The notes under the pieces were generated by a model, which saw nothing but the letters and a program-made list of their open reading frames with translations, made no database searches and had not been told where the DNA came from. The position numbers and the translations under genes were made by a program. 64,000 nt of DNA from Malacoraja senta (Eukaryota): contig CM075980.1 in the NCBI GenBank assembly GCA_038087875.1, positions 9,300,001-9,364,000 of the forward strand, written 5' to 3'. Of this stretch, positions 10,025 through 62,696 are shown piece by piece; positions within the stretch are counted from its first letter, which is position 1; each line of letters opens with the position of its first letter.

Positions 10025-10372
10025 GTATATACGCGGAGACTACCTTGACTCAGGTCCCGGCTATATCAACCTCGCCGGGAAAAACCGTCAAAATCACCTG
10101 TACCCTGTCAGGGGGCAGGATCGGTAGCTACTACACGAGCTGGTACTGGCAGAAGCCGGACAGCAGCCCTGTGTTCGTGTGGTATGAAGGCTCCACCAGA
10201 GGCACCGGAATTCCAGACAGATTCACGGGTTCCGTGGACTCATCCATTAACCAAATGCATTTAACCATCACCAACGTGCAATCGGAGGACGCTGCCGATT
10301 ATTACTGTGGTGCGTGTCACAGCAGTAACTACAAATTCACCTTTGGGAGAGGAACCAAACTGAATCTAAGCA
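10025..10372 (+). CDS. IGLV: Ig lambda (type II/NS3-like) germline-joined VJ exon, cluster 1 (CDR3 GACHSSNYKFT)
   Basis: CAG acceptor at 10022-10024. Ig V motifs ITC, WYWQKP, DYYC continue in frame into FGRGTKLNLS with no RSS between V and J. GTAAGT donor at 10373. Confidence 0.97.
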
Positions 10373-10467
10373 GTAAGTAAAATATTCACGTTTTGATACA
10401 ACGAATCGTTGAACTTAGGTTTTGCTTTCCCTCATAAATCCTCGGTAGAAAGATCATCTTAAACCTA

Positions 10468-10619
10468 AGTAGAACACAACGGGTCAGCTAGCATCTCAGG
10501 TAGACGTATGGATGGGCAATATTTCGTGTCGGAACAAAGTCTCTTTGGGAGACTGTACCGAAAGGAAAATCGTCGTTCTATGTCCTCCAGAGATGCTGTC
10601 GGATCCGCTGTGCTGTACT
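10468..10619. repeat. Imperfect ~75-bp-arm inverted repeat (two Penelope-like termini head to head) in J-C intron; copies 27300-27451, ~48590-48750, 62792-62943
   Basis: Centre AGTCTC-TTTGG-GAGACT (10538-10554). Outer arms match 23/30 (GAGATGCTAGCTGACCCGTTGTGTTCTACT vs GAGATGCTGTCGGATCCGCTGTGCTGTACT). Confidence 0.75.
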
Positions 10620-12224
10620 CAAGATGGCAACTTGTTTCTCCTACGTGAACTTGGTGTTTATGATCCTTTATCTCCATCCCTACAACACTCCGAGAAATCT
10701 GCGCTCACCTAACCGTGGCTTCTTGATCATCGTGGAATTTAACGCCTTCACATACTGACAGTTGTGCTTCAAAGTTGTTAAATTCTGGAATGATATCATC
10801 AAGCTCTATTTTCTCCTTTCTTCCCCGATGTTCATGAAACCTGTTCCTTTAACAGAAATACCGATTCTCTGATTTGAAGTATCCTCAAATGGCGGGTTTC
10901 GTCCGAGACTGCTGCTATTGATCACTTTGCTTCAATATAAGCGTAATGCAAACGAAAACTGTTGCCGTTTCCTGAAGAAATGTTCGGGAAATTATGAGAT
11001 TTTATTAGTTTTCGGTATATTGTGGATACGGAGAATACCAACTCTGACAGTGGGCCAAATCGAATCATTGGAAGCATCCAAATGAAAGTTAATAAACATT
11101 TGGCAAGGGATGTTGGTGAATTAAATGGGATATTTTTTAAATTGCAAATACCCATTAGGGCAACTTGCGCGAAGTTGATTTCTGATCGTTTTAATGATAC
11201 CATGAGGGTGAAGTGGCGTTTCGACGGGTTTACATGCGCTCCCGACAACAGCGCTAAAACTAATTGTCAAGGAAAAGGTAAAAAAACAAATATTTAAACG
11301 CTTCGCACGGCACCATTTCAATTCCCTTTACGCGAAAGTGTGGAGGATTGTTGCAAGTCTGATTCAGCTCCGAAATTAGAAACAAGAGCAGAACCGTATT
11401 CGGGTTCATTTCTCGTTCAGCTAGCCATTGCCACCTTAGCTGATCACATTTGTGTGGATATGCCGTCAGACACTTTGTACCCACCTTGTAGTACCTGCAA
11501 GGGATTTTGATGCTGGTTCTCCGATTGTCATCGAGCGTATGATGCAGCAGAAAACACAGCCTGTTCATTATGCTGTTAAACATGATCCCTCTGATTGTTG
11601 ATTTTATTTACGGGCAGGCAGTTGGTAGACCGACATGTTAAAAAGCTTAAAAGAGCGAGACATCATTTTGCCATTTTCGGATAAATTAGTGCAGAAATGG
11701 GCACACAAGTATACGAGGTTATTGCTGAATTGCCTAGAATCGAAAGATTGGAAGGATATATTACAGCTTTAAATTCAGCTTTAGCTTGATATGGTTTTTT
11801 AAGTCCGAATATGTTGGATGTTAAACCCAGAGCTGTCTCGATATGTGTCAGAAGGTATTTGAATCTGACAAAACATTTCCTGAGTTTTACCTTTCATATT
11901 GCTGACCGCCACAATCCTTGAATCAATGGACTTTCTGGACGATGTGGAAGATTCACTAATAAGTAACATTCTAAAGACTATTCCGGGAAAGAATTGGGAT
12001 TACTGTTTAAACAAGCATTAATTTGGAAATGCTGCTCATTCTGCCAGGATGAGGTGTGATTCCATTTTTCCTTCCCGTTTCCATGATCTGAAGAAAATCG
12101 TAGGCCACATGTTTTACCAAACCTCGGATATTCGCACAGTAAAAATTAACTTATCATGTTTCTGCTGTATAAAATGAGGTTTATAAATCAACGGTAATTG
12201 TAAAGCCAGTGCAGTACACCGCCA

Positions 12225-12700
12225 TAGAGCCACAGTCATAGAGTTATGCAGCGGTGGAACAGTCCTGAAGTCCACCTATTTCATGCCGACCGAGGTGCCC
12301 TACTTGAGCTGGTCCCATTTGCGCGTGCCAGGTCCATATCTCTTTGATCCTTTCTTATCCAAGTATTAATTGAAATGTTTTTTTAAATGGTGTTATTGTA
12401 CCTGCCTCATCAACTTCGCCGGGGAACTCTTTCCATGGAGTCAACGCATTATGTGTACAAATGTTGCACTGAACCTAAACCCTCTAATTCTTCATTCTCC
12501 TATTATGGGGAAAACCATAAGTATTCCGTGCGCTAACCCTATGTATTCCCCTCGCGATTTTGTATACCGCCATGCGATCACCCTAAGGACTTCTACATAC
12601 CAAGGACTAACGTCCTCGCATGTCCAATCTATGCCTATAGTTCAGGCGTTCGAAACCTGGCACCGTCGTCGTAAATCTTGCCTGGAGTCGTTCCAACTGA
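12225..12700 (-). mobile_element. Old, highly decayed CR1 3' end in J-C intron (copies ~29060-29540, 50350-50800)
   Basis: Patchy similarity to the reverse complement of the CR1 3' fragment at 1513-1752 (e.g. AAATGTTTTTTTAAATGGTGTTATTGTACCTGCCTCA). Confidence 0.65.
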
Positions 12701-12767
12701 ATCGATTCTGACTTTTAACGTCAACTGATAAATAACTCACTTGAATTTATTTCAATTCTATTTTCAG

Positions 12768-13090
12768 GTCCGCGGCCCCCCACCGTTTCCATTCTGGCGC
12801 CTTCAATGGGTGAAGTCACCGCAAAAAGTACCGCCACCCTGGTGTGTTTGGTGAGCGGGTTCAATCCGGGCGCTGTTGACATTGAATGGACCGTAGACGG
12901 CAGTGCGAGAAGTAATGGCGCTGCGACCAGCCGGGTCCAGCAGGAGAAGGACAACTCGTTCAGTGCGAGCAGTTACCTGACTCTGCCAGCCTCCGACTGG
13001 AACTCACACGACCTTTACTCCTGTGTGGTTAAACACGAAACCCAGGCAAACCCGATTAAGGCCAATATCGCCAGATCCAGTTGCCTCTAA
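12768..13090 (+). CDS. IGLC: Ig lambda light chain constant exon, cluster 1
   Basis: TTTTCAG acceptor (12761-12767). Phase-1 join gives S-PRPPTVSILAPS..ATLVCLVSGF..IEWTVDG..SSYLTL..YSCVVKHE..SSCL-stop with a penultimate Cys. Confidence 0.97.
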
Positions 13091-13269
13091 TTCAAAGGAT
13101 GAAATTCCCGATTTGCTACATTTCTTTGTAAATTAATCCAATATTCAGATATCGAATGTTCGCTTTAACAGGGTATTTGTTCAAACGCAGCACGTGTGCA
13201 TTTTGTTGCCTTGAATGCGCTGTCCGTATTTTACGATGAACTGAAAAACAATAATGTAACATTTAATGC

Positions 13270-13275
13270 AATAAA
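13270..13275 (+). terminator. Candidate polyadenylation signal AATAAA, cluster 1
   Basis: 180 nt after the C stop and conserved in clusters 2 and 3. A second AATAAA lies at 13341. Confidence 0.7.
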
Positions 13276-14069
13276 CCCGATTATTCTATTTACGATGCAT
13301 CGTTGTCATTTTACTGTGCAAATGTCCTTGCCTTCAATAGAATAAAAACAATAATGTCCGATGATGCCAGTGTATATAAACTGTCATTTAGTGAAACGTC
13401 GTTATATTTCAAATAAACTGCGTTTTCATGATTGATGATGATCCATGTGTTAGGACAGCTGAAGGGACTGCTTGCAAGTACCCCCCCGATTGAAGAAATT
13501 AGGTGCAAATCCGTGTCTCCTATTTTGGATATACCAGAAATACGGAAGGGCAGTCCGTTACGCTAATATGCTTAAATGACCCAAATGTCTCAAATCGATC
13601 CGCACAAAATATCACAATGTATCAGTTTATTCCATGAAAACGCGATGAAAAGTGTGGTTTGACGAATTCGTAAACCGCGGCATTACCGTGGTCCTAACTC
13701 AGCTCAACATGAATCACCAGAAGTGGTCATATATTTAAACAATGTAACGAGAGGAATAAAGTTCAGGCTCGGCGGGGTGAGCGCTAGACTCATCTTGAAG
13801 GGGGGCTTCGCGCCAACAATTAACCGAAGTAAAAGTAGTTACTTCGCGATTCCCAGAAATGGGATAAACAGCTTTCGGGATATGGCAACTGCTTGGATGT
13901 TCTTCTCTGGGAATTAAAAAAATGTTTAACAGGAGGAATAAATTGGGAGAATTTATGTACTGTGGCTGGGGAAAATCTGCTTCCGATGTGGGTAAGTCCT
14001 ATCTGGAGAGACCCTCCAGTATGATGTCAATTTCCAGTCATAAAATAACAGGTTGGGGACGTGTGCTGT

Positions 14070-14365
14070 CTATTTTCACCCCATCCCTTCCTCCACGGTT
14101 ATCATTCACTCCCTTTCCCCCTTATTTTATGGCTGATTTCACTTCTTGTTCACCCCCAGCCTTTGCCAAGTAACCCCCACCGCCATCTGCTAATCAATCC
14201 CCTCTCACATGTATCCACCTATCACTTGGCAGGCTGTATTACACCTCATATCTATTTTCCAGCTTTCTCCCCTCTGTTCCAATTACTCTGCAGAAGGTTC
14301 TCAACCTGAAATGATGCCTCGCCATTCTAATCAGATGTTGCCTGACCCGGCGAGTCATGTAGAGT
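14070..14365 (+). mobile_element. Penelope-like 3' terminal region with degenerate hammerhead core (copies ~30905-31200, 52180-52475)
   Basis: Pyrimidine-rich stretch, then CTGCAGAAGGTTCTCAACCTGAAA and CAGATGTTGCCTGACCCGGCGAGT, related to the terminus at 6748-6838. Confidence 0.6.
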
Positions 14366-15058
14366 CCAATGGCGATGTCTTGTTTTGCTGGATTTGTCCG
14401 GTATTATGATTACCTCTCTGATCGAATTTACCTCTTCAATCCACTTCTTGTCAGAAAAAACATAATCTCGGAGGCCCCATTAATTAAATAGAGAGCCGAG
14501 ATTAGAAAGTGAGAGTAGAAAGAAAAGTAACGTTTTATCCTTAAATATATACTATTTTCATTTTCTTGAATCAGCTTTTTCAACGATATAATTAATTTAC
14601 AAAGTGAGATTTTTTTAAAGAGACAAAACTCGTATTTTATAGTCTTACAGCCGCTTGTAAAATTGAAGTAATTAGGCGGGGAAAGCCTCAAAGTTAGTGA
14701 CAGAAGGAGAAACTCCGTCCTCAGCATTACCCTCTCTTGATCCAGGGCCAAGGCTTGATTGCTGGCGTGCATGAAGCGGACAACTCCTGGGGCCTTGTGG
14801 CTACCTTCCGCATCCGAAGCAGGCAAATCTGGACGGACGGCGGACCACATCTGGAACAATTCGCATGATATACGATTACAATTCGATACCCAACATTCTC
14901 ACAATTCCACTTGTGAAGCTCACTACGTATATTTATCAGTTAATGCAAAAGTCGTTACAAAGCCACAAATGACCGATATTTCCCACCATGGCCACGGTAC
15001 ATTATGATTCGTTCTTCACTAAAGGCTGGAGCTACGAACGTTTCCAAACAACGGAGAG

Positions 15059-15351
15059 GGGCACATTGGCCCAGCGCTGGAGGTGCTGCCTCACAGCGCC
15101 AGGGACCCGGGTTCAATCCCGACTATGGCTGCTGTCTGTATGAAATTTGTACATTCTCCCCAGAGCCGCGTGGGATTTATCTGGGTGCTCCGGTTTCCTC
15201 CCACGTTCCACAGACGTACAGATATTTTTAGATTAATTGCCTTCTGTAAATTGTCCCTATTGGATGGATATACTGTATGGGCTGATTGCTGGTCGGTGTT
15301 GACTCGATTAGCCGAAGGGCCTGTTTCCACGCTGTACTGAAGTAAACTAAA
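15059..15351 (+). mobile_element. tRNA-derived V-SINE (HE1-like)
   Basis: A box TGGCCCAGCGC (15067), B box GGTTCAATCCC (15110), V-domain core GGGTGCTCCGGTTTCCTCCCAC, CR1-type 3' tail GCCGAAGGGCCTGTTTCC and (TAAAC)n end. Confidence 0.88.
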
Positions 15352-15472
15352 CACTTGCGTCCACGAACTTACTGGATTGGAATGCTCGTCCGTTTCTTCA
15401 CTTCCTAGTTCAGTTGCAAAAATAAGACAAAGTGTCTTATTTGTCCCGACAACTGTGCGCCCCCCCCCCCCC

Positions 15473-16445: not shown

Positions 16446-16449
16446 GATT

Positions 16450-26716: not shown

Positions 26717-26762
26717 ATGGCTGCATGGGTTTGGGTTCTCGCCTTGGTGACCTGTTTCCACT
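26717..26762 (+). CDS. IGL: Ig lambda cluster 2 leader exon
   Basis: MAAWVWVLALVTCFH + T, GTGAGT donor at 26763. Confidence 0.93.
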
Positions 26763-26856: not shown

Positions 26857-27204
26857 GTATAAACGCGGAGACTACCTTGACTCAGGTCCCGGCTATATCA
26901 ACCTCGCCGGGAAAAACCGTCAAAATCACCTGTACCCTGTCAGGAGGCAGCATCGGTAGCTACTACACGAGCTGGTACTGGCAGAAGCCGGACAGCAGCC
27001 CTGTCTTCGTGTGGTATGGAAGCTCCACCAGAGGCACCGGAATTCCAGACAGATTCACGGGTTCCGTGGACTCATCCATTAACCAAATGCATTTAACCAT
27101 CACCAACGTGCAATCGGAGGATGCTGCCGATTATTACTGTGGTGTGCAGGACCACAGTAACTACAAATTCACCTTTGGGAGAGGAACCAAACTGAATCTA
27201 AGCA
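26857..27204 (+). CDS. IGLV: Germline-joined VJ exon, cluster 2 (CDR3 GVQDHSNYKFT)
   Basis: CAG acceptor 26854-26856, open V+J frame, GTAAGT donor at 27205. Confidence 0.97.
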
Positions 27205-29601
27205 GTAAGTAAAATATTCACGTTTTGATACAACGAATCGTTGAACTTAGGTTTTGCTTTCCTTCATAAATCCTCGGTAGAAAGATCATATTAAACCTAA
27301 GTAGAACACAACGGGTCAGCTAGCATCTCCGGTAGACGTATGGATGGGCAATATTTCGTGTCGGAACAAAGTCTCTTTGGGAGACTGTACCGAAAGGAAA
27401 ATCGTCGTTCTATGTCCTCCAGAGATGCTGTCGGATCCGCTGTGCTGTACTCAAGATGGCAACTTGTTTCTCCTACGTGAACTTGGTGTTTAAGATCCTT
27501 TATCTCCATCCCTACAACACTCCGAGAAATCTGCGCTCACCTAACCGTGGCTTCTTGATCATCGTGGAATTTAACGCCTTCACATACTGACAGTTGTGCT
27601 TCAAAGTTGTTAAATTCTGGAATGATATCCTGAAGCTCTATTTTCCCCTTTCTTCCCCGATGTTCATGAAACCTGCTCCTTTAACAGAAATACCGATTCT
27701 CTGATTTGAAGTATCCTCAAATGGCGGGTTTCGTCCGAGACTGCTGCTATTGATCACTTTGCTTCAATATAAGCGTAATGCAAACGAAAACTGTTGCCGT
27801 TTCCTGAAGAAATGTTCGGGAAATTATGAGATTTTATTAGTTTTCGGTATATTGTGGATACGGAGAATACCAACTCTGACAGTGGGCCAAATAGAATCAT
27901 TGGAAGCATCCAAATGAAAGTTAATAAACATTTGGCAAGGGATGTTGGTGAATTAAATGGGATATTTTTAAAATTGCAAATACCCATTAGGGCAGCTTGC
28001 GCGAAGTTGATTTCTGATCGTTTTAATGATACCATGAGGGTGAAGTGGCGTTTCGACGGGTTTACATGCGCTCCCGACAACAGCGCTAAAACTAATTGTC
28101 AAGGAAAAGGTAAAAAAACAAATATTTAAACGCTTCGCACGGCACCATTTCAATTCCCTTTACGCGAAAGTGTGGAGGATTGTTGCAAGTCTGATTCAGC
28201 TCCGAAATTAGAAACAAGAGCAGAACCGTATTCGGGTTCATTTCTCCTTCAGCTCGCCATTGCCACCTTAGCTGATCACATTTGTGTGGATATGCCGCCA
28301 GACTCTTTGTACCCACCTTGTAGAACCTGCAAGGGATTTTGATGCTGGTTCTCCGATTGTCATCGAGTGTATGATATAGCAGAAAACACAGACTGTTCAT
28401 TATGCTGTTAAACATGATCCCTGTGATTGTTGATGTTATTTACGGGCAGGCATTTGGTAGACCGACATGTTAAAAGGCTTAAAAGAGCGAGACATCATTT
28501 TGCCATTTTCGGATAAATTAGTGCAGAAATGGGCACACAAGTATACGAGGTTATTGCTGAATTGCCTAGAATCGAAAGATTGGAAGGATATATTACAGCG
28601 TCTTTAAATTCAGCATTAGCTTGATATGTTTTTTAAGTCCGAATATGTTGGATGTTAAACCCAGAGCTGTCTTGATATGTGTCAGAAGGAATTTGAATCT
28701 GACAAAACATTTCTTTAGTTTTACCTTTCATATTGCTGACCGCCACAATCCTTGAATCAATGGACTTTCTGGACGATGTGGAAGATTCACTAATAAGTAA
28801 CATTCTAAAGACTATTCCGGGAAAGAATTGGGATTACTGTTTAAACAAGCATTGATTTGGAAATGCTGCTCATTCTGCCAGGATGAGTTGTGATTCCATT
28901 TTTCCTTCCCGTTTCCATGATCTGAAGAAAATCGTAGGCCACATGTTTTACCAAACCTCGGATATTCGCACAGTAAAAATTAACTTATCATGTTTCTGCT
29001 GTATAAAATGAGGTTTATAAATCAACGGTAATTGTAAAGCCAGTGCAGTACACCGCCATAGAGCCACAGTCATCGAGTTATGCAGCGGTGGAACAGTCCT
29101 GAAGTCCACTTATTTCATGCCGACCGAGATGCCCTACTTGAGCTGGTCCCATTTGCGCGTGCCAGGCCCATATCTCTTTGAACCTTTCTTATCCAAGTAT
29201 TAATTCAAATGTTTTTTTAAATGGTGTTATTGTACCTGCCTCATCAACTTCGCCGGGGAACTCTTTCCATGGAGTCAACGCATTATGTGTACAAATGTTG
29301 CACTGAACCTAAACCCTCTAATTCTTCATTCTCCTACTATGGGGAAAACCATAAGTATTCCGTGCGCTAACCCTATGTATTCCCCTCGCGATTTTGTATA
29401 CCGCCATGCGATCACCCTAAGGACTTCTACATACCAAGGACTAACGTCCTCGCATGACCAATCTATGCCTATAGTTCAGGCGTTCGAAACCTGGCACCGT
29501 CGTCGTAAATCTTGCCTGGAGTCGTTCCAACTGAATCGATTCTGACTTTTAACGTCAACTGATAAATAACTCACTTGAATTTATTTCAATTCTATTTTCA
29601 G

Positions 29602-29924
29602 GTCCGCGGCCCCCCACCGTTTCGATTCTGGCGCCTTCAATGGGTGAAGTCACCGCAAAAAGTACTGCCACCCTGGTGTGTTTGGTGAGCGGGTTCAATC
29701 CGGGCGCTGTTGACATTGAATGGACCGTAGACGGCAGTGCGAGAAGTGATGGCGCTGCGACCAGCCGGGTCCAGCAGGAGAAGGACAACTCGTTCAGTGC
29801 GAGCAGTTACCTGACTCTGCCAGCCTCCGACTGGAACTCACACGACCTTTACTCCTGTGTGGTTAAACACGAAACCCAGGCAAACCCGATTAAGGCCAAT
29901 ATCGCCAGATCCAGTTGCCTCTAA
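29602..29924 (+). CDS. IGLC: Ig lambda constant exon, cluster 2
   Basis: AG acceptor 29600-29601. Only 3 nt differ from C1 over 323 nt (one N>D). Confidence 0.97.
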
Positions 29925-36925: not shown

Positions 36926-39665
36926 CTTAAGGGCAAGGCTGCTTTATCAAAGGGAGCTGAAGGAATGCTCTGTGTTCTGTTTCACAGAGACATGGCTCAC
37001 CCCCAGCTCCCCAGACTCAGTGGTCCAGCCTGAAGATTTCTCCATCCACCGTATGGACCGTACACTGGCATCTGGGAAAGGGAGAGGATGGGGCGTCTGC
37101 CTCGCGGTCAACTCTGCGTGGTGCTCAGACGTGGCAGTCCTGTCCAACTCCTGCTCTCCACACCTAGAACATCTGGCGGTGAAGTGCCGTCCCTTCTACC
37201 TTCCAAGGGAATTCACCTCCATCATCATGACCGCGGTCTACATCCCACCCCAGGCTGACGTCCGTCTGGCACTGGAGGAGCTGCACGGCGTGGTCAACAA
37301 ATACCAGACGTCTTACCCCAAGGCGTTCACCACCATAGCTGGGGACTTCAATAAGGTAAACCAAAAGAAATCACTCTCTAACTTCCACCAACATGACTCC
37401 TGCTGCACCAGAGGACCAAACACCCTCGACCACTGCTACACCACCATCAAGAATGCCTATCGCTCTATCCCTCGCCCTCACTTCGGTAAATCCGACCATA
37501 CCGCGGTGCTGCTTCTTCCTGCCTACAGGCAGCAATTAAAGAGCGCACCCCCAGAGGTGAGGACAGTACAGAGCTGGTCGGGGGGAGGGGGGGGGGTGGC
37601 AGGGGAACAACTCCAGGACTGTTTGGAGTCTGTAGACTGGCCAATGTTCAAGGACTCGGCAACGGACCTGAACGAATACGCCACAGTCGTTACAGACTTC
37701 ATTAAGAAGTGTGTGGAGGACTGCATCCCCACCAAAACCTTCCGAGCGTTTCCCAATCAGAAACCTTGGATGAACTTTGAGATCTGCACTCTTCTGAAGT
37801 CCAGACACCGGGCATTCATGTCTGATGATACAGTGGCCTACAAGAAGTCCAGATACGCCCTTGGTAAGGCCATCAAAAAGGCCAAAAGGGGCTTCTGCTC
37901 CAAACTGGAGGAAGAGACAGATGTTCAGCGGCTGTGGCAGGGCCTGAATGCAATCACCTCTTACAAGTCGAAATCAGTAGGCAGCTTGAATGTCGGCGAA
38001 ACATCACTCCCTGATGAACTCAATGCGTTCTATGCACGCTTTGATAGGGAGAACACCGATGTGCCTTCCCCAGCCCCCATTCGCTGTGATGGTATTTCAT
38101 TCTCAGTCACAGAGGCCGACGTCAGGAAATCCTTCAGAGGGGTGAATCCTCGAAAAGCACCTGGACCTGGTGGTATACCTGGTCGTGTTCTAAAAACCTG
38201 TGCGGACCAACTGGCTGGAGTTTTTACGGACATTTTCAACCTCTCACTTCTGAGGTCTGAGGTTCCCACCTGCTTCAAAAGGGCATCAATTATACCAGTG
38301 CCCAAGAAGAGTAAGGTGACGTGCCTCAATCACTATCGACCTGTGGCACTAACGCCTGTGGTGATGAAGTGCTTTGAGAGGTTGATCATGACGCAGATCA
38401 ACTCTTACCTCGACAAAAACCTGGACCCACTGCAGTTCGCTTACCGCCACAACAGATCAACGGTAGATGCGATCTTGCTGGCCCTCCACTCCGCTCTGGA
38501 CCACTTGGACAACAAAAACTCATATGTCAGGCTGTTATTCATCGATTACAGCTCGGCATTTAATACAATCATCCCCTCCAAGCTGGTTACCAAACTCGCA
38601 GAACTGGGTCTCTGCGCATCCCTCTGCAATTGGATCCTCGACTTCCTCACTCTCAGACCACAGTCTGTTCGTATTGGTGGAAATGTGTCAGACTCGATAA
38701 CAATCAGCACGGGAGCACCTCAAGGCTGCGTACTCAGCCCCATGCTGTACTCACTCTATACTCATGACTGTGTAGCCGGACATAGTGCGAACTCCATCAT
38801 CAAGTTCGCTGATGACACCACTGTTGTGGGACGTATCACTGATGGGGATGAGTCAGAGTATAGAAGAGAGATCGAGCAACTGTCCATATGGTGCCAGCAC
38901 AATAACCTGGCCCTCAACACCAGCAAAACCAAGGAACTGATTGTGGACTTTGGAAGGAGTAGGATGGGGACCCACAGTCCCGTTTATATCAACTGGTCGA
39001 TGGTTGAAAGGGTCAAGAGCTTCAAATTCGTGGGCGTGCACATCTCTGAAGATCTTTCCTGGTCCGAGAACACTGATGCTATTATTTAGAAAGCACATCA
39101 GCGCCTCTACTTCCTGAGAAGATTACGGAGAGTCGGTTTGTCAAGGAGGACTCTCTCTAACTTCTATAGGTGCACAGTAGAGAGCATGCTGACCGGTTGC
39201 ATCGTGGCTTGGTTCGGCAACTTGAGCGCCCTGGAGAGGAAAAGACTACAAAAAGTAGTAAACACTGCCCAGTCCATCATCGGCTCTGACCTCACTTCCA
39301 TCGAGGGGATCTATCACAGTCGCTGCCTCAAAAAGGCTGGCAGTATCATCAAGGACCCACACCATCCTGGCCACACACTCATCTCCCTACTATCTTCAGG
39401 TAGAAGGTACAGGAGCCTGAAGACTGCAACGACCAGGTTCAGGAATAGCTACTTCCCCACAGCCATCAGGCTATTAAACCTGGCTCGGACATAACACTGA
39501 ACTTTATTAGCCAATACTGATATTTGCACTTTATCAGTATATTGACCCATGTGTGTATATATTTATACAATGCCTTGTAGTCAATGCCTACTATCTTCTG
39601 TTGTGCTGAAGCAAAGCAAGAATTTCATTGTCCTATCTGGGACATATGACAATAAACTCACTTGA
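36926..39665 (+). mobile_element. Near-intact 5'-truncated Rex1/Babar-clade LINE (APE endonuclease + RT), unit-3-specific
   Basis: Frame open from 36927 to 39494 except one TAG at 39087-39089. Motifs TETWL, CRPFYLPREF, AVYIPP, GDFN, DPLQFAYR, GAPQGCVLSP, KFADDT, QRLYFLRRL. 3' AATAAA at 39651. Clade assignment is by motif recall. Confidence 0.93.
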
Positions 39666-42600: not shown

Positions 42601-43599
42601 TGTAACCTCTGATGTGCGGTCCCATCCACCTCTGTAACATATCACTACCCACCTTGTTTATTAGGAATATTTCTACCTTTGAAAAATAATACCACATTTT
42701 CAGAAACGTAATTGATGAGGCTTTCTCCATTCTGATAGATATGTTTGTTTCTTCACTTTTGAAGTAGGCATTTATTTTTGTGTAACCGGTGACGTTTAGT
42801 TTTAGATTACCCCAGACGAATTGTCCTCGCCCTTCACATGCTGATAAGACCCCGCATAATCACCTGTGCTTCAATTAAAGCACCTCTCACGCTTCTAACC
42901 GTCGAGCAATTCCTCATAAGACAACTCACTCGTTGCAGATATGGGTCTACTAGTAATCATTTTCTGAATTGCTTCAAAGGCATTTACATTTCAATACTCT
43001 GTTCGATTCTGCGATAAAGTATAACTGAAGCACTATCAACCTCTCTCTTTTGCATTCGTTTTTTCTGGCGTAAGATGCTAACACTGTTACCTTTCCTAGG
43101 TAGTTGTTGTACCACGTTCTAGCCTGTGGCGAATCCTCACCAGCAAACTGAAATAATTCTGCATCTCTAAACACTGCAAACTGTCATAATGTAAATATGA
43201 AGGGCCTCGACCCGAAACGTTAATCATCCCTTCTCTCCAGAGATGCTGCGTCCCGCTGCGTTACTCCAGCTGTTTGTATCTATATTGGAAAGAACATTAT
43301 TTTATACCACTTACCCAGCCAAACTTGACATTGCACATGTTCCCACATCTCGCATTTACCAGGCCTTTGCCCATTCACTGGAACTATCCACATACTCGGT
43401 GGCCTTGTTTCGTTCTTCATGAGATTAACAAATTCAACAGCCATACATTTTTTTTTAGCATTTTTGGAAATTTGGAAATTGGGGTTCCAGCACTGATCTA
43501 TGAGGCACTTCAGTTTTTACATCTTTCCAACCACAATTTTGCCTGTTTATGCATGTTCTATGTTTCCAACTAATCGCCCAATGTTCTTTTCTTAACCAT

Positions 43600-44690
43600 A
43601 CTTACCAGGACTTAGAAATCGGGGGCAGAGTAGGCTATTCGGCCCTTCGAGCAGCACCGCCATTCAATATGATCATGGATGATCATCCAAAATCAGTACC
43701 CCGTTCCTGCTTTCTCCTCATATCCCATGATTCCATCAGCCCTAAAAGCTATATCTAACTCTCTCTTGAATACTCCCAATGAATTGGCCTCCACTGCCTT
43801 CTGTGGCAGAGAATTCCACAGATTCACGTATCGGCGTAAAAAAGTGTTTCAGCATCTCTGTCCTAAATGGCCTACCCCTTTTTTTTAAACAGGGACCCCT
43901 GGTTCTGGATTCCCGCCAACATCGGGAACATTTTACCTGCATCCAGCTTATCCAATCCCTTAAGAATGTTATATGTTTCTATAAGATAACCTCTCATCTT
44001 TCAAAATTCCAGTGCATATAAGCCCACTCGATGATATGTCAGTTCCATTAATCTGGTGAATTTACGTTGCACTCCCTCAATAGCAAGAATGTCCTTCCTC
44101 AAATTTGGAGACCAAAACTGCACACAATACTCCAGGTGTGGTCTCACTAGGGCCCTGTACAACTGCAGTAGGACCACCTTGCTCCTATACTCAAATCCTC
44201 TCGCTATGAAGGCCAACGTGCCATTCGCTTCTCTTCACTGCCGACTGCATCTTCATGCTTTCTTTCAGTGGCTGATGTTCAAGGACACCCAGGTCTCGTT
44301 GCACCCTCCCTTTCCCATATCTGACACCATTTAGATAATAATCTGCCTTCTTCTTGCCACCAAAGTGGATAACCCCACATTTATCCACGTTATACTGCAG
44401 CTGCCATGCATCTGCCCATTCACCCATCCTATCCATGACACCCTGCAGCCTCATAGCATCCTCCTCGCAGCTCACACTGCAACCCAGCTTTGTGTGATCA
44501 GCAAACATGGAGATGTTACATTTAATTCCTTCATCTTAATCGTTAATATATATTGTTAATAACTGAGGTCCCATCACTGAGCCTTGCTGCACCGCACTAG
44601 TCACTGCCTGTCATTCTGAAAAGGACCCGTTAATTCCTACTCTTTGCTTCCTGTCTGCCATTCAGTTCTCCATGCATGTCAATACCTACC
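43600..44690 (-). mobile_element. CR1 LINE 3' fragment, unit 3 copy
   Basis: Minus ORFs 44001-44216 ([19 protein letters not shown]) and 44191-44508. Confidence 0.9.
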
Positions 44691-44819
44691 CCCAATATTA
44701 CCACAGTATTTACCATATCAACCTTTGATTCCTCACCTCCTCAAATGCCTGCTCGAAATTATATCTGCCTGGCATGGTACTTCTTCAAAGCCTTTCGGTA
44801 AATTGGTGAAACATCCTTC

Positions 44820-46420
44820 ATAAATTCATAAATTATAGGACCAGAATTAGGCATTTCGGCTCACTAATTCTACCCCGCCATTCTATAACGCTTGATTTAT
44901 CTCTCCCTCTCAACTCCAATCTCGTGACTTCTTCCCATAACCCTTAACACTCTTACTAATCAACAACCAATCAATCTCCACCTTAAAAATATCCATTGAC
45001 TTGGCTTCCACAGCTTTCTGTGGCAATGAATTTTGCAGATTTACCACCCTCTGACTAAAGGAAATCCTCCTCATCACCTTTTGTAAATGTATGTCCTTTT
45101 ATTCCGAGGCATCCACTCCACATCCACTCTATCCAGGCCTTTCACAATTCGGGTAGTTTCAATGAGGTCTCTCCCCTCTCATCCTTATAAACTATTCTGC
45201 GAGCATGGATCCAGTGCCGTCAAACGCTCATCACACGTTAACCCAATTGAATGAATGAATAGGTTTATTCGCCAAGTATGTACACATACAGGGAATTTGT
45301 CTTGGTGCTCCGCTCGCAAGCAACAACACGACATTCAGTAAACCATTAAGAATAAAACATTTATTAAAACATTAAGAATAAAACATCGTAGATTAAACAT
45401 GTGAATGAAATAAAATACCAGAGCAAAAGGAGGCTACCGACTTTTAGTTATTGAGTAGAGCTACTGCTCGTGGAAAAAATGCTGTTTTTATGTCTGACTG
45501 TGGCGGCTTTGACAGTCCAGAATCGCCTTCCAGAGGGAAGAGCTTCAAAGAGTTTGTGGCCAGGGTGAGAGGGGTCAGAGATGATCTTACTGGCTCGCTT
45601 CCTGGCCCTTACAGTGTACAGTTCGTCAATGGGGGGAAGGTTGCAGCTGATCGAACGATTCCCTGCAGCCTCCGGATGTCGTGCTTGGTGGCTGAGCCAA
45701 ACCAAACCATGATGGAGAAAGTGAGGACAGACTCGACGATGGCAGTATAGAATTAAACCATCATTGCCTGTGGCAGAATATGTTTCCTCAGCTGCCGCAG
45801 GAAGTACATCCTCTGTTGGGCCTTTTTGACTGTCGAGTCGATGGTGGCTCCCCATTTAAGGTCCTTGGAGATGATGGTTCCAAGGAACTTAAAGGACTCC
45901 GCAGATGTGACTGTGTTGTTGTTAATGGTGAGTGGGGGTGGGGGGGGGGTGGGGAGATGGGGAGCTCTCCAAAGGTCTATTATCAATTCCACCATCTTAA
46001 GAGCATTGAGCTCCAGACTGTTACGAAGAAACCAGGTCGCCAGCTGTGTCATTTCCTGTCTGTAGGCAGATTCCACCCCATCCTGGATCAGTCCAATCAG
46101 GGTTGTGTCGCCCCATGGGATCCCTGGGATCCCTGGGATCACCCTCGTAAACCTCCTCTGGACCCTCTCCAACGCCAGCTCGTCCTTCCTCAGATTGGAG
46201 CCCAAAACTGTTCACAACACTCCAAATGCGGTCTGACCAGTGCCTTATAAAGGCTCGGCATTACATCCCTGTTTTTGTATTTTGTTTTTGTGTTCTGGCC
46301 CACTCGAAAGAAATGCTAGCATTGCATTCGCCTTCCTGACTACCGACTTGTAAATTAACTTTTGGGGAATCCTGCACCAGCACTCCCAAGCCCCTTCGCA
46401 CCTATCATTTCAGAAATTTC
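44820..46420 (-). mobile_element. Second CR1 subfamily fragment, unit 3 copy, split by a Rex1 insertion at 45249-46128
   Basis: Homologue of 8388-9095. Flanks ...GTTAACCCAATT and ATCCCTGGGATCACCCTC... are nearly contiguous in unit 2. Confidence 0.82.
45249..46114 (-). mobile_element. 5'-truncated Rex1/Babar LINE (RT C-terminus + 3'UTR), unit-3-specific
   Basis: Minus ORF 45753-46205: DTTLIGLI..ESAYRQE..SFKFLG..KKAQQRMYFLRQL. 3' AATAAA and (ATTC)3 tail at 45249-45260. Confidence 0.9.
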
Positions 46421-48013: not shown

Positions 48014-48059
48014 ATGGCTGAATGGGTTTGGGTTCTTGCCTTGGTGACCTGTTTCCACT
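48014..48059 (+). CDS. IGL: Ig lambda cluster 3 leader exon (MAEWVWVLALVTCFH + T)
   Basis: ATG at 48014, GTGAGT donor at 48060, 94-nt intron. Confidence 0.93.
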
Positions 48060-48153: not shown

Positions 48154-48495
48154 CTATAAACGCGGAGATTACCTTGACTCAGGACCCGGCTATATCAACC
48201 TCGCCGGGAACAACCGTCAAAATCACCTGTATCCTGTCAGGGGGCAGCGTCAGTAGCTACGACAGGAGCTGGTACTGGCAGAAGCCGGACAGCACCCCTG
48301 TCTTCGTGTGGTATCAAAGCTCCACCAGAGGCACCGGAATTCCAGACAGATTCACGGGTTCCACGGACTCATCCACGAACCAAATGCATTTAACCATCAC
48401 CAACGTGCAATCGGAGGACGCTGCCGATTATTACTGTGGTGTGTGGGATGGCAGTAAATTCACCTTTGGGAGAGGAACCAAACTGAATCTAAGCA
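48154..48495 (+). CDS. IGLV: Germline-joined VJ exon, cluster 3 (CDR3 GVWDGSKFT, 2 aa shorter)
   Basis: CAG acceptor 48151-48153, open frame, GTAAGT donor at 48496. Confidence 0.97.
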
Positions 48496-50869: not shown

Positions 50870-51192
50870 GTCCGCGGCCCCCCACCGTTTCCATTCTGGC
50901 GCCATCAATGGGTGAAGTCACCGCAAAAAGTACCGCCACCCTGGTGTGTTTGGTGAGCGGGTTCAATCCGGGCGCTGTGGACATTGAATGGACCGTAGAC
51001 GGCAGTGCGAGAAGTGACGGCGCTGCGACCAGCCGGGTCCAGCAGGAGAAGGACAACTCGTTCAGTGCGAGCAGTTACCTGACTCTGCCAGCCTCCGACT
51101 GGAACTCACACGAGCTTTACTCCTGTGTGGTTAAACACGAAACCCAGGCGACCCCGATTAAGGCGAATATCGCCAGATCCAGTTGCCTCTAA
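50870..51192 (+). CDS. IGLC: Ig lambda constant exon, cluster 3
   Basis: CCAG acceptor to 50869. 323 nt, 8 nt differences from C1, 3 amino-acid changes. Confidence 0.97.
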
Positions 51193-51371: not shown

Positions 51372-51377
51372 AATAAA
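51372..51377 (+). terminator. Candidate polyA signal, cluster 3
   Basis: AATAAA homologous to 13270. Confidence 0.7.
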
Positions 51378-55741: not shown

Positions 55742-58700
55742 ATAGAAATCGACCGCGTGGGCAGAAGATACTGATGCAGTCTCCGATTATAACGGTAGAT
55801 GGCGGTGCAGTACCATACTTCTGTGCTGAAGCTCAACACGCCAATTCTGAAATGGGTCAACTGCAATATTATGTGTCTGAGCTCACGTATAGACCAGACC
55901 AGCAATAATTGGATTATTTTCCCCTTGAAGGATATATTTGGGATCCAGTTGTTTTGTAATAATCAATCAAACACCGTGATGTTTCTTTTGAAAGATTCTA
56001 GACACTTAACAGAATTTAGATTCCACATGTTCTCTTTTGAAAGGCCTCTGCGTTCGTAATGATGTGATTTCGGTTTGATACCATTGCTTATCTGCACTTC
56101 CTTCACCTTTGCAGGGAGCGATTTTACGGAATCTTTCACTGGATATAAATATTCTCCTTTCACGGTTTTCTGATTCTGCTACGGTATAACCAGCTTGAGA
56201 GCTAACCTCTCCGGTTACTCAATACTATGTTCTTTGCAACCCAACATATATCACAGGTTTTGCTCACTACTCTCGCGATGTATCTTTTTACCTTGCCAGA
56301 TGTGTGCTCATGAACCTAAAGTCCCTCTGTTCCTGCGCACTATGAACTACATTGCCCCCCCCCCCCGCCTTCCATACACGAGGCAAAATTTCCTAGCTCA
56401 TACTTCTCTGTGAGAGATTTCATCCATCATTCATCTGCTCATTCTCGTGTCATATTTAAATTTGAAGTGCACGCTGAGTACTCCTCTCTCTCTCCTGCGT
56501 GTAAGCCGCTATTCTATCACGATTGTCGATGTGAATATATTGCTGTCGGTAGAGAACTCAACTAGGTATAGGGATAGAGGAGAATGAAATAATTGGCCAA
56601 AATGTTCGTGCATACTGAATGCGAATAATAAGAATGTTACCTTATATATCTCCGGGAGAGCCTTTAATTTTTTCCCCAACAAACATGAAGACAGTTGCAA
56701 ACAGGATTTTGTACATTTGATTGTGTTATCTATGACTTGCCCAAAATCACTGGATGCAAATTGCTTTGAATTTATTGTTGCTACTCTCCATTACATAGTT
56801 TATTGTATTCGCTGGACCTGTTCGGCAAATTCTGAGTAATTGTGGGTCTGGAGTCACATACATTTTAGACTTTTCCTTCTTAAAGTAACTGAAATCACTT
56901 TTAATTACAACTCAATAGCGTCATGCTTGCGTTACCAATTCCAGCTTTTAATTTCAGATTTACTTTAACTCTGATATCAGCGCCAAATCACAGAATTATA
57001 TTGAATTCAGTTATCTCCAATTGTGCTGAATATCAAAAAGACTACAGGTAATACGTGATTCATTAATTCAAAGAATATTAATGTTTGTTTTGCGTCTTAT
57101 TCTATCACGAATGCACAATAATGGCGTTCCACGCTGGACTGGGGAGAAGAACACGAAATATACATGAATATCATTCTCCACTTCCATTAGTGACATTACT
57201 TCAGACCTCCATAAGCTGCATTTGCCATCTACATCCACCATTCAGATGTCCGCACTCACCAAGCTTATTTCTTCAGATCTGGCCTGGCAGCTATCTCCAG
57301 CTTTCTGCAAGGAGACCCTGAACGCGGGCTTGGACTGGGGTGAGTAGGTCTGAGGGTGCCGCGGCAACGGACTTGCCCTTGAGACAGGCAGGATACATCC
57401 ATCCCCAGGTTTCCATGTCCTCTAGAGATGCTGCACGACCCGCTGAGTTTCTCCAGCACATTGTGTTTTAAAAAAAATCAGCAGCTGAAGTTCTCAGTAC
57501 CCCCCAAGGTTTCCATCTATAAATTTGCCAAGGTGTTTGGTTCTGAATATCAATGAAAGTCATAAAGATAAAAAATACGGCGGCATGAGATGAACGCTAT
57601 TCTCTTAAAAGAAACAAACAGAAAATCAAATTACATCTCATTTAACACTGAGAACTCTTGCTTGCAGAAACATCGCAGGCACGTGGACTGAGACAGAAAA
57701 AACACACAGGAACAAATTATACATCAATTATACATACAAATCTGAAAGAAACAAACAAGATTGCGTCCTAAAACATAACAATATAAAACATGTCGATAGT
57801 GTGCAAGGAATGGGGCATGGTGTCCCTTTGTTGAGGCAAGATTAGGGTTATGTAGGTCCTTCCAAAAACTGGATAGTTGTAGGCAAGTAACTGTTCTTGA
57901 ACCGGGTGGTGTACTTTCTGTAGTAGATCTGTAAAAGTTTGTTGGAATATTTGGAGACATAAAGTATTTCTTTAAAATTCTTTGAAAGTAGAAGCATTGG
58001 CGCTCTTCCGTGGATGCATTTGTTTGCTGGGCCCGAGACAAGTCATCCACGATGTTAATGCCGTGAATTTAAAGCTGATAACTCTCTCCACCACTGCTCC
58101 ACCAAAAACAAACTGGGCTGAGGTCCCCGGACTTCCTCTTTCTGAAGTCAGCGACCACTTCGGTCTTGTTGCTTTGGAGCGAAAGGTTGTTGTTCTGACA
58201 CCACTCAACCAAGTGTTCCGTCTCTCTTCATGTTGACGCAGCACCATCAGTGATTCGTCCAAACAGAATGGTGTTGGGGGTGGATAAATAGATGACTTTG
58301 GAGCTGTGGGTGTAAAGGAAGTAGCCATGGGTGTAAAGGAAGTAGAACAGGGTGCAAAGCACGCAGCCTTGAGATGCACTGTGTTGATGATCAATGGGGA
58401 GGAGATGATGTTCCCCATCCGCACTCGGTCACGAAGCTAATTCACCAAACAGTAAAATGGTGACTAAGCTGATTGTAACCTCTGATGTGCGGTCCCATCC
58501 AGCTCTGTAACATATCACTACCCACCTTGTTTATTAGGAATATTTCTACCTTTGAAAAATAATAAAGACTGCTTCTAGCACATTTTCAGAAACGTAATTG
58601 ATGAGGCTTTCTCCATTCTGATAAATATGTTTGTTTCTTCACTTTTGAAGTAGGCATTTATTTTTGTGTAACCGGTGACGTTTAGTTTTAGATTACCCCA

Positions 58701-59479
58701 GACGAATTGTCCTCGCCCTTCACATGCTGTTAAGACCCCGCATAATCACCTGTGCTTCAATTAAAGCACCTCTCACGCTTCTAACCGTCGAGCAATTCCT
58801 CATAAAACAACTCACTCGTTGCAGATATGGGTCCACTAGTAATCATTTTCTGAATTGCTTCAACCGCATTTACATTTCAATACTCTGCTCGATTCTGCGA
58901 TAAAGTTTAAGTGAAGCACTATCAACCTCTCTCTTTTGCATTCGTTTTTTCAGGCGTAAGATGCTAACACTGTTACCTTTCATAGGTAGTTGTTGTACCT
59001 CATTCCAGCCTGTTGCGAATCCTACCAGGGAACCGACATACTTCTGCATCTCAAAACACTGCAAACTGTCATAATGTAAATAAGAAGGGCCTCGACCCGA
59101 AACGTCACCTATTCCTTCTCTCCAGAGATGCTGCCTGTCCCGCTGAGTTACTCCAGTCTTTTGTGTCTATATTGTAAAGAACATTATTTTATATCATTTA
59201 CCCTTCCAAAATTGACATTTCACATGTTCCCACATCGTGCATTTACCAGGCATTTGCCCATTCACTGGAACTATCCACATGCACGGCGGCCTTGTTTGGT
59301 TCTTCATGTCATTAGCAAATTCAACAGCCAGACATTTTTCAGCCGTGTTTATACATTTTTGGAAATTGTGGCTCCAGCACTGATCTATGAGGCACATACC
59401 TTTTTGCATAACCAGAAATTAGCCTGTTTATGCGTTTTCTATATTTCCAACTGATCGCCCAATGTTCTGTTCTTCCGAT

Positions 59480-60570
59480 GACGATAAACATCAGGACTCT
59501 TAGGAAATAGGAGCAGGATAAGGCCATTCGGTCCTTCGAGCAGCACCTCCGTTCAATATGATCATGGCTGATCATCCAAAATCAGTACCCCGTACCTGCT
59601 TTCTCCCACATCTCATGATTCCGTCAGCCCTGAAAGCTATATCTAACTCTCTCTTGAACATATCCAGTGAATTGGCCTCCACTGCCTTCAGTGGCAGAGA
59701 ATACAACAGATGCACAACTCGCTGGGTAAAAATGTGTTTCCGCATCTCAGTCCTAAATGCCCTACCCCTTATTTTTAAACGGCGACCCCTGGTTCTTGAC
59801 TCCCCTAACATCGGGCATATATTACCTGCATCTAACGCATCCAATCCCTTAAGAATGTTATATCTTTCTATAAGAACCCCTCTCAGCCAACCGAATTCCA
59901 GTGCATATAAGCCCAGTCAATCATTTGTCAGTTCCACCATACCGGGAATTAATCTGGTGAACCTACGTTGCACTCCCTCAATAGCAAGAATGTCCTTCTT
60001 CAAATTAGGCAACTAAAACGGCACACATTTTTCCAGGTGTGGTTTCGCCAGGGCCCTGCAGTAGGTCCACCTTTCTCCAATACTCAAATCCTCTCGCTAT
60101 GAAGGCCAACATGTAATTTGCTTTCTTCACTGCCTGCTGTACCTGCATGCTTTCTTTCAGTGACTGATGTTCAAGGACACACAGGTCTCGTTGCACCTCC
60201 CCTTTCCCTAATCTGACACCATTGAGATAATAATCTGACCTTGTTTTTGCCACCAAAGTGGATAACCTCATATTTATCCACACAATACTGCATATGCCAT
60301 GCATCTGCCCACTCACCCATCTTGTCCGTCACCCTGCAGCCTCATAGCATCTTCCTCGCAGCTCACACTGCCACCCAGCTTTGTGTGATCCGCAAACTTG
60401 CAGATGTTACATTTAATTCCTTCATCATCGTCAATATATATTGTATATAACCGAGGTCCCATCACTGAGTCTTGTGGCACTCCACTAGTCACTGCTTGCC
60501 ATTCTGAAAAGAACCAACTAATTCCTACTCTTTGCTTCCTGTCTGCCATACAGTTCTCCATCCGTCAATA
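59480..60570 (-). mobile_element. CR1 LINE 3' fragment, unit 4 copy
   Basis: Near-identical to 7155-8245. ORF 59572-59844 is identical in protein to 7247-7519. Confidence 0.9.
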
Positions 60571-60712
60571 CCCTACCCGCAATATTACCGTATTATTTAC
60601 CATATCAACCTTTGATTCATCTCCTTAACAAATGCCTGCTCGAAATTATATCTGCCTGGCATGGTACTTCTTCAAAGCCTTCCGTTAAGTTGGCGAAACA
60701 TCGTTCATGAAT

Positions 60713-61420
60713 TCATAGATTGTAGGAGGGGAATTAGGCTATTCGGCCCATCAATTCTACCCCACCATTCTATCACGCTTGATTTATCTTTTCTTCTCAA
60801 CCCCATTCTCCTGACTTCTTCTCATAACCCTTAATATAGTTACTAATCAACAACCACTCAATCTCCACCTTAAAAATATCAATTGACTTGGCTTCCACAG
60901 CCTTCTGTGGCAATGAATTCCACAGATTTACCACCCTCTCACTAAAGGATTTCCTCCTCATCTCCTTTTTAAATGGACGTGCTTTTATTCTGAGGCTTTC
61001 ACCTCTGGTCCTAGACTCCCCCGCTCGGCGAAACATCCACTCCACATCCACTCTATCCAGGCCTTCACAATTCGGTTAATTTCAATGAGGTCTCACCCCT
61101 CTCATCTTCATAAACTATATAGCGAGCACGGATCCAGTGCCGTCAAACGCTCATCACACGTTAACCCAATTATGCCTGGGATCACCCTCGTAAACCTCCT
61201 CTGGACCCTCTCCAATGCCAACTCATCCTTCCTCAGATTGGAGCCCAAAACTGCTCACAACACTCCAAATGCGGTCTGACCAGTGCCTTATAAAGGCTCA
61301 GCATTACATCCCTGTTTTTGTATTTTGTTTTTGTGTTCTGGCCCTCTCGAAAGAAATGCTTTCCTTGCTGCCGACTTGTAAATTAACTTTTGGGAAATCC
61401 TGCACCAGCACTCCTGAGCC
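60713..61420 (-). mobile_element. Second CR1 subfamily fragment, unit 4 copy
   Basis: Homologue of 8388-9095. Confidence 0.83.
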
Positions 61421-62054
61421 CCTTTGCTCTCTCTTTATCAACAACATTTTAACTTTTGCGAGATAATCTGGATCATTTTGTCAGTACCCTTTATATCGTT
61501 TTGGTAACAGCTTCCAATATTTCTCCAGGACAGATGTGCAACCAACTGGCCTGCGGTGGACGACTTTCTGTCTCTCTTCCTTTCTGAACGTCCATGGTAG
61601 TGTTGAAATAAAAAAAATCAAACCAATGAATTCAGTACTGCAAGGGAATTAATTAAGACTCTAGAATGAAATACAATACATCTCAACGCCCTGTCAGCCC
61701 GATGAAAAATTACCATTTAAATAATCTGCCATTTCCATATTCCCCTTTAATTATACGACTGCGAATTATTTGTAGGAAAAGGACAAATGTATTATTTTAT
61801 ACTTATTTGGGAGCTTAAGGGGATTATTGCAAAGTCTGTACAGTCCCATCAATCAACACAGCTGATCCCTTTTACTCAGTAAATAAGAGCCTGCTCTCAC
61901 ACAACAGTTCCCGTCTGAGTCTCAGAGCTTCTCTCCCCCTCCCCCCGCCGCCGTTGAGATCACCGTTGTCAGCTATTCTCCTCCCACTTAAAACAATATG
62001 AATATTTCTTTCTCCCAAAGGGCTGGAGCTGCAGAAATCTCATTTTACACGGAG

Positions 62055-62144
62055 CCAATAATTCAGTGAATCGATGTGACGTGGATAAAGATTTTGCATG
62101 AATAATTAATAATTAGTGACGTTGGGATGCTGAAGACTTTAAAA
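62055..62144 (+). promoter_or_regulatory. IgL cluster 4 promoter: CCAAT, TGACGT (62077), ATTTTGCAT (62091), TGACGT, TTTAAAA
   Basis: Positional homologue of the other promoters. Confidence 0.7.
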
Positions 62145-62208
62145 GAGAAGCGTCGAAAGGGCTCAAAACCTCGCTTGTGTAGCAAAATATTGGTTTATCA
62201 CCTTCGAC

Positions 62209-62254
62209 ATGGCTGCATGGGTTTGGGTTCTCGCCTTGGTGACCTGTTTCCACT
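62209..62254 (+). CDS. IGL: Ig lambda cluster 4 leader exon
   Basis: MAAWVWVLALVTCFH + T, GTGAGT donor at 62255. Confidence 0.93.
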
Positions 62255-62348
62255 GTGAGTAGAGCGCAGAATGATTAATGTTGTATCGTTTTACATTCTG
62301 CTGTGTTTTTTCTAATTGTTCTGTATATTTATCTGTTTTTTCTATCAG

Positions 62349-62696
62349 GTATAAACGCGGAGACTACCTTGACTCAGGTCCCGGCTATATCAACCTCGCC
62401 GGGAAAAAACGTCAAAATCACCTGTACCCTGTCAGGGGGCAGCATCGGTAGCTACTACACGAGCTGGTACTGGCAGAAGCCGGACAGCAGCCCTGTCTTC
62501 GTGTGGTATGGAAGCTCCACCAGAGGCACCGGAATTCCAGACAGATTCACGGGTTCCACGGACTCATCCATTAACCAAATGCATTTAATCATCACCAACG
62601 TGCAATCGGAGGACGCGGCCGATTATTACTGTGGTGTGTGGGACAACAGTAACTACAAATTCACCTTTGGGAGAGGAACCAAACTGAATCTAAGCA
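62349..62696 (+). CDS. IGLV: Germline-joined VJ exon, cluster 4 (CDR3 GVWDNSNYKFT); C exon expected ~1.1 kb beyond the window end
   Basis: CAG acceptor 62346-62348, open frame, GTAAGT donor at 62697. The J-C intron continues to 64000. Confidence 0.97.

Follow-up and report, generated by a model that had tools for sequence, protein, structure and literature searches.

The 64 kb of DNA from the skate Malacoraja senta analysed in this work (contig CM075980.1 of assembly GCA_038087875.1, positions 9,300,001-9,364,000 of the forward strand; hereafter the window, in whose numbering coordinates are given) are filled by four head-to-tail units, spaced 16-19.6 kb apart, of germline-joined immunoglobulin (Ig) light-chain genes. 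Each unit repeats, in tandem, a leader exon, an exon combining the variable (V) and joining (J) segments, and a single constant (C) exon of the C1-set about 2.4 kb 3′ of the VJ exon. In all four copies V and J form a single exon, with neither recombination signal sequences nor any intervening sequence, and the reading frame of each copy runs uninterrupted from framework region (FR) 1 through FGRGTKLNL to a GTAAGT donor. These exons, all on the + strand, lie at 10025-10372 (V1), 26857-27204 (V2), 48154-48495 (V3) and 62349-62696 (V4). V4 matches the Pfam V-set domain (E=2e-16), to which V1 is assigned through this paralogue, and is the copy nearest to the inferred ancestral state of the third complementarity-determining region (CDR3; TGG GAC AAC); V2 carries a private CDR3 doublet (TGG>CAG at 27147-27148), and V3 diverges most from the others and has a CDR3 6 nt shorter. 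The leader exon of cluster 1 (9885-9930, + strand) starts with ATG, is hydrophobic in its translation, ends at a GTGAGT donor and aligns across the four units, its counterparts lying at 26717-26762, 48014-48059 and 62209-62254. The first C exon is found at 12768-13090 (+ strand; C1-set domain, E=5.6e-25) and those of clusters 2 and 3 at 29602-29924 and 50870-51192, the fourth falling beyond the end of the window; the array itself extends past the window at both ends.

The best protein matches of these exons are named Ig lambda or light chain, and come from Squalus, the sandbar shark (Carcharhinus plumbeus), batoids and skates including Amblyraja radiata, one protein of which shares 100 of 112 V residues with V4; no record was found that matches the V and C reading frames of the window exactly. 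By these sequence comparisons the four loci are tandem clusters of germline-joined light-chain genes of the Ig lambda (type II) class, from a skate. Like the type I clusters of skates and the lambda clusters of the sandbar shark, they form multiple V-J-C clusters in which V and J are fused in the germline, but they differ from the skate type I genes in being of the lambda/type II class. They stand near those of Amblyraja: flank divergence is 1.3-2.6% within the close trio (units 1, 2 and 4), 5-10% from A. radiata and 8-11% from Rhinoraja, so that flanks group by species.

Adjacent differences in the V exons and their controls

An earlier note on this DNA claimed that the differences between the germline V exons are rich in tandem dinucleotide substitutions, in a way resembling the somatic hypermutation of sharks. 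Its counts prove correct. Seventeen codons of the mature VJ distinguish V2 from V3, to which a deletion of two CDR3 codons in V3 has to be added, and five of the 17 are adjacent double changes (GGA/CAA, GTG/ACG, ATT/ACG, CAG/TGG and CAC/GGC); where V4 has TGGGAC, V1 has TGTCAC and V2 has CAGGAC. The C exons, with three sites differing between C1 and C2 and eight between C1 and C3, have no adjacent pair, as stated, but since they carry only these 3-8 differences they have no power as a control for adjacency. Alignment artefact as the source of the exon doublets was considered and rejected, the exon alignment being ungapped except for one 6-nt indel.

For a stronger comparison the four whole units were aligned, the non-coding control was gap-masked and each change was assigned to the copy or copies carrying it. 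Counted pairwise, 29-48% of the differing V sites fall in runs of at least two, compared with 9-11% of the differing sites of non-coding flanks in close pairs and 19-22% in pairs involving the divergent unit 3. When changes are counted by lineage, 24 singles and five same-lineage doublets (17%) fall in the V exons, and same-lineage runs there are never other than 2 nt long. All non-coding DNA together has 667 singles and 51 multi-base events (7.1%), from which the V exons differ with a Fisher P of only 0.058. Once a hyperdivergent repeat block is left out, however, the non-coding figures become 494 and 15 (2.9%) and the difference is clearer (P=0.003).

This repeat-derived block of 2 kb (6700-8800 in unit 1, 43130-45100 in unit 3), which we both included in and excluded from the control, is an observation in its own right. 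Unit 3 is there about 13% divergent from the other three, with many runs of 2-5 nt, against 3-6% in the neighbouring DNA, and its segment there is either far more ancient or another copy of this repeat. Most runs in the non-coding control come from the block, which dominates any tandem-substitution control in which it is included.

Within the exon itself, block permutation (blocks of 12-342 nt) predicts 0.8-1.7 adjacent pairs where five are observed (P=0.002-0.007), and a null in which site variability is taken from other skates only predicts 0.8-1.2 (P=0.001-0.006). On the other hand, perfectly linked doublets make up 4 of the 33 variable columns of the exon and 9 of the 139 of its immediate flanks (600 bp upstream and 1200 bp downstream), which is no significant difference (P=0.22). 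The lineage of unit 3 alone has no excess (multi-base events 2/13 in the exon, 41/350 in non-coding DNA), whereas the short-branch lineages do (3/14 and 10/368; P=0.009). In non-coding DNA as such, 18 adjacent pairs are observed where local density predicts about 14. The richness in doublets claimed for the V exons is, then, real as a pattern, about 2-fold over the local flanks, but the excess is modest, depends on the control chosen, consists of five events and was noticed post hoc.

The same pattern is found outside this genome. A protein search started from a Mobula protein, together with a cluster look-up, yielded lambda paralogues in A. radiata, Rhinoraja longicauda and Leucoraja erinacea, in all 11 further lambda VJ exons with flanks from three skate species, bringing the comparison to 15 genes with V1-V4. 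Among the paralogues of A. radiata and Rhinoraja, multi-base events are 16% of pairwise exon events and 7.6% of those in the flanks, the pairs not being independent; perfectly linked doublets among the A. radiata paralogues (2/49 in the exon, 5/155 in the flanks) do not differ significantly. A 2-fold ratio of exon to flank that recurs in other skates is a general property of these genes rather than of this window.

Doublet states, selection and exchange between copies

Single-step intermediates for most doublets, the observation set beforehand as decisive against a hypermutation-like process, are what the 15 genes and the read contigs contain: five of the seven doublets have them. The states of CDR2 codons 51-52 (10186-10191, + strand) are GAA GGC, GGA AGC and CAA AGC, each of them also present in other skate species. 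Codon 51 is GGA, GAA, CAA or GCA among the skate genes, and because GAA exists (in V1 and six others), the difference GGA/CAA reduces to two steps through GAA. At codons 94-95, TGG GAC is common, TGT GAC is found in three A. radiata genes (Ar1, Ar5 and Ar6), and TGT CAC of V1 is one step beyond. Codons 95-96 form a chain of single steps, which would have run from GAC AAC to GAC GAC (Ar3), GAC GGC (Rl3) and GAT GGC (V3, Ar4 and Le1), and at codon 96 the CAC of V2 and the GGC of V3 stand on separate branches from AAC, the latter by way of AAC-AGC-GGC. The hypervariable patch of CDR3, codons 93-96 (10312-10323, + strand), has 10 of its 12 columns variable and harbors three of the five same-lineage doublets.

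Two further doublets are in FR3. Polarity is taken here from the 11 genes of the three other species, whose orthology with those in the window is not assured. At codon 67 (10234-10235, + strand) V1 and V2 have the ancestral GTG, V3 and V4 have ACG; at codon 71 (10247-10248, + strand) the ancestral state is ACG, found in nine genes and retained by V3, and V1, V2 and V4 share the derived ATT. An ATG intermediate for the latter (ACG-ATG-ATT) was seen among the reads of four runs aligned to the window, which assemble only into short contigs, and from mixed species; in run X1, a contig carries G at 27080 and retains the T at 27079. Codons 66-67 of V3 (48360-48380) have the derived TCC ACG, a duplicate of what codons 70-71 read 12 nt farther downstream, and a local quasi-repeat could have templated the change from TCC GTG, an idea to be set against a chance of about 1 in 9 for such a match.

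Part of the adjacency may come from CpG context. A CpG-transition step can be recognized in four of the five same-lineage doublets (C|GTG>C|ATG, ACG>ATG, CGG>CAG and GAC|GGC>GAT|GGC), and non-coding columns involving CpG are 2.4 times more variable than others, with a CpG observed/expected ratio of 0.67; together these favor sequential hits at adjacent positions with short-lived intermediates, though the effect is moderate. Stepwise adjacency is also seen outside coding DNA, in two adjacent variable columns of the 5′ untranslated region (9868-9869 and equivalents) that read CC in unit 1, GC in unit 2, GG in unit 4 and CA in unit 3, a series built by single steps.

If the doublets were the product of a mutator acting on the V region, they should bear the marks described for it. 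In sharks, somatic hypermutation acts on the transcribed V region, concentrates its G:C changes at WRCH/DGYW and has a large tandem fraction (PMC5931798, PMC8781386). The check for enrichment at WRC/GYW that the earlier note proposed was run, and among the variable G/C sites of the V exons there is none: 5/19 lie in such hotspots, compared with 43/160 of the invariant ones, an odds ratio of about 1 in a test of low power; for WA/TW the figures are 7/14 and 70/155. None of the G/C bases of the V-exon doublets is in a WRC/GYW hotspot. Neither does the variation spill over into the introns. Variable sites in the close trio amount to about 2% upstream and in non-coding DNA, 4.3% in the leader intron (four sites in 94 nt) and 2.1-3.6% in the 500 bp with which the J-C intron begins, and these two intronic stretches show no excess of divergence or of tandem changes; over the initial 1.2 kb of the J-C intron the trio has one tandem change, and the leader and proximal J-C introns together have one among some 35 variable sites. 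CDR2 and CDR3 reach 9.5% and 26%.

What does stand out is replacement. The proportion of replacement sites that differ (pN) in the CDRs is 0.10-0.14 within the close trio, where flank divergence is 0.013-0.026, and 0.13-0.18 against V3, where it is 0.06-0.08; CDR replacement divergence is given as 5-8 times that of introns; framework pN is 0-0.04, and the corresponding silent estimates (pS) rest on 0-2 silent changes. Nearly all V changes are CDR replacements. Extra variation restricted to the replacement positions of antigen-contact codons is the pattern of selection and not that of targeting, and diversifying selection would be its cause. A similar distribution was described for the germline-joined type I genes of skates, in which the differences gather in the CDRs and replacements are in excess over silent changes (Anderson et al. 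1995, PMC2192082, as summarized in its abstract, where tandem doublets are not mentioned); the present genes resemble them in both respects.

The states involved also seem to move between copies. Upstream of V1 (2890-9754 in unit 1 coordinates) the informative sites form mosaic blocks, grouping units 1 and 3 against 2 and 4 over 2890-5786, and 1 and 4 against 2 and 3 over 5926-9754, and in the 1.7 kb around V (9868-11603) the split pattern switches about eight times, intronic sites included. The codon 67 doublet is flanked by two sites (10187 and 10322) of a split pattern other than its own. Between codons 67 and 71, closely linked at 12 nt apart, the four-gamete test is violated: V1 and V2 have GTG/ATT, V3 has ACG/ACG, V4 has ACG/ATT, and GTG/ACG is carried by other skates as well as by one contig of run X5. 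The existence of all four combinations implies recombination or conversion inside the exon, or else the improbable repetition of a doublet. Templated conversion, which had been put forward as one way of diversifying these genes, is in this manner supported as a mechanism of shuffling, and in the four clusters compared, within which no specific pair of donor and tract was mapped, the copies appear to exchange short tracts.

Sharing between species points the same way. Eighteen of the 33 variable V columns are also variable in other skates, where 7.6 would be expected, and two-codon CDR states are common to several skate species, unlike the flanks. Either the CDR alleles are older than the flanks around them or the flanks have been homogenised more, and against such surroundings the exon looks over-mutated and clumped. 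Conversion, rather than recurrent mutation, may be behind the shared states. The only length difference behaves similarly: the six nucleotides AACTAC (10327-10332), missing in V3 after 48456, lie at the presumed V-J junction, and the short CDR3 of V3 is also found in all three Rhinoraja genes and in Ar4 of A. radiata, which makes it an old length allele and not a recent deletion. We also considered whether the CDR3 doublets themselves are junctional, from independent joining of V and J, and rejected it because this 6-nt difference alone sits at the junction, codons 93-96 being V-encoded and upstream of it.

Three features of the units are recorded here apart from the V exons. Unit 3 alone has an insertion (about 36.9-39.5 kb) with an open reading frame of 705 amino acids (36972-39089, + strand) matching reverse transcriptase (RVT_1, E=1.4e-31); it is a retrotransposon of the LINE (long interspersed nuclear element) type, and the longer unit spacing of 19.6 kb is due to it. 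An octamer-like promoter element (9768-9778 and equivalents) reads ATTTGGCAT in units 1 and 2 and ATTTTGCAT in unit 4, and is one base shorter in unit 3 (TTAGCAT); these differences might affect the expression of individual clusters. A short stretch of the J-C intron at 27406-27467, over which contig depth sums to 10,000-137,000 in each of the four read runs, is a very high-copy interspersed repeat.

Weighing the explanations

The best explanation of the doublets is, in our opinion, one of stepwise selected substitutions at hypervariable codons, shuffled by conversion, to which we would give a probability of about 0.7. According to it, the doublets would mostly be the end points of successive point substitutions, and not single events, at a few antigen-contact codons, chiefly codon 51 of CDR2 and codons 93-96 of CDR3, where diversifying selection would maintain many alleles. 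Unequal crossing-over and gene conversion of short tracts would homogenise the flanks within species while shuffling old CDR and FR3 states between copies, CpG context would contribute some of the adjacency, and the one or two doublets lacking intermediates could be ordinary germline multinucleotide mutations. Repeated hits under positive selection had been named at the outset as the main alternative to a mutational signature, and they turn out to be the best-supported origin of the doublets. The combination has the appearance of concerted evolution and diversifying selection in tandem immune families, with which it shares flanks homogenised within species, a mosaic signal and mobile variable patches; it differs from the conversion of chicken pseudo-V genes (discussed in PMC2193156) in that the exchange is germline and evolutionary, not somatic.

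Several observations weigh against this explanation. No intermediate exists among the 15 genes for GTG>ACG at codon 67 (V3 and V4) or for TGG>CAG at codon 94 (V2), and the ATG state at codon 71 comes from a single short contig of an unlabelled run, placed at 85% likeness, which makes it weak. The measured CpG effect is only about 2.4-fold. The five same-lineage adjacencies exceed the 0.8-1.7 expected under the nulls of site-rate heterogeneity (P=0.001-0.007), so stepwise independent hits alone under-predict them; the intermediates found in other species may have arisen by convergence instead of being ancestral, and this genome contributes only four genes to the sample.

It is here that ordinary germline multinucleotide mutation comes in, of the kind that a translesion polymerase prone to error (pol zeta, for example) would produce everywhere at a low rate and that selection would keep preferentially in CDR and FR3 codons, where it reaches amino acids that single steps reach poorly (W>Q, V>T). 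The survival of the adjacency excess under site-rate nulls and the two exon doublets without intermediates are what such mutations would leave; about 3% of the non-coding events of the locus are multi-base (15/509), among them the very change seen at codon 67 (CCGT>CCAC), and codon double hits are documented elsewhere (PMC7954308, PMC10336034), tandem mutations being some 0.1-1% of those in the human germline (PMC8781386). The present genes share with those double-hit cases the over-representation of adjacent double changes within codons of a positively selected gene, but differ from them in that most cases have observed intermediates. Moreover, non-coding adjacency barely above chance at the given local density indicates a low base rate for such events. 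As a general account of the doublets it is therefore unlikely, since no more than two codons call for an instantaneous double hit. Pure chance, that is, the clumping of a few adjacent hits noticed afterwards, gains from the smallness of the sample of same-lineage events (five), from the comparisons with all non-coding DNA and with the local flanks (P=0.058 and 0.22) and from the absence of any excess in the lineage of unit 3; but the short-branch lineages (P=0.009), the permutation and site-rate nulls (P=0.001-0.007) and the recurrence of the 2-fold pairwise enrichment in A. radiata and Rhinoraja all speak against it, and we find it quite improbable.

The possibility for which the doublets drew attention in the first place is that pre-joined VJ genes with their promoters are transcribed in germ cells and there undergo hypermutation of the shark somatic type, AID and error-prone repair leaving heritable tandem substitutions of 2-5 nt. 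The 29-48% of V sites that are contiguous superficially recall the tandem share of about 40-60% in shark somatic hypermutation (PMC8781386, PMC5931798), and in the nurse shark (Lee et al. 2002, as cited in these two papers) light-chain V differences likewise come in contiguous stretches of 2-3 nt, with a similar share in runs. Precedent for lymphoid enzymes in germ cells is also at hand, as germline joining by RAG in the germ cells of sharks was argued from the germline-joined genes (PMC2193156), and germline V genes with an imprint of somatic mutation have been proposed, controversially, before (e.g., PMC5704389). The present changes, however, are between germline paralogues, lie off the AID hotspots, with no doublet G/C base in one, and do not extend into introns, which differs from what those citing papers relate of the nurse shark. 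The leader and proximal J-C introns, which somatic hypermutation would also hit, are at background divergence, and this argues against it. The changes are almost all CDR replacements, the doublets for the most part decompose into single steps, their states are old and common to several species, and perfectly linked doublets are no commoner in the exon than in the adjacent introns. A germline process of the AID/error-prone-polymerase kind, as proposed in the earlier note, is on these grounds not supported and scarcely credible for the doublets as a whole. A narrower version, in which only GTG>ACG at codon 67 (V3 and V4) and TGG>CAG at codon 94 (V2) were single-event tandem mutations of germ cells, through transcription-linked repair that was AID-initiated or otherwise error-prone, is itself very improbable; were it true, shark hypermutation would find a germline echo in these two.

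A true signature of germline hypermutation would be of consequence, because it would mean that a mutator of lymphocytes shapes inherited antibody genes, with a bearing on the old debate about transmission from soma to germline and on the origin of the germline-joined genes. The pattern seen in these skate lambda clusters is of an ordinary kind. Adjacent differences between V paralogues are to be expected at hypervariable codons, and it would be prudent to read no mutational signature into them before intermediates, intron controls and hotspot tests have been brought to bear. The evidence gathered in this work leads back to the conventional picture of these antibody genes, one of selection for diversity at the antigen-contact codons and of conversion among tandem copies.

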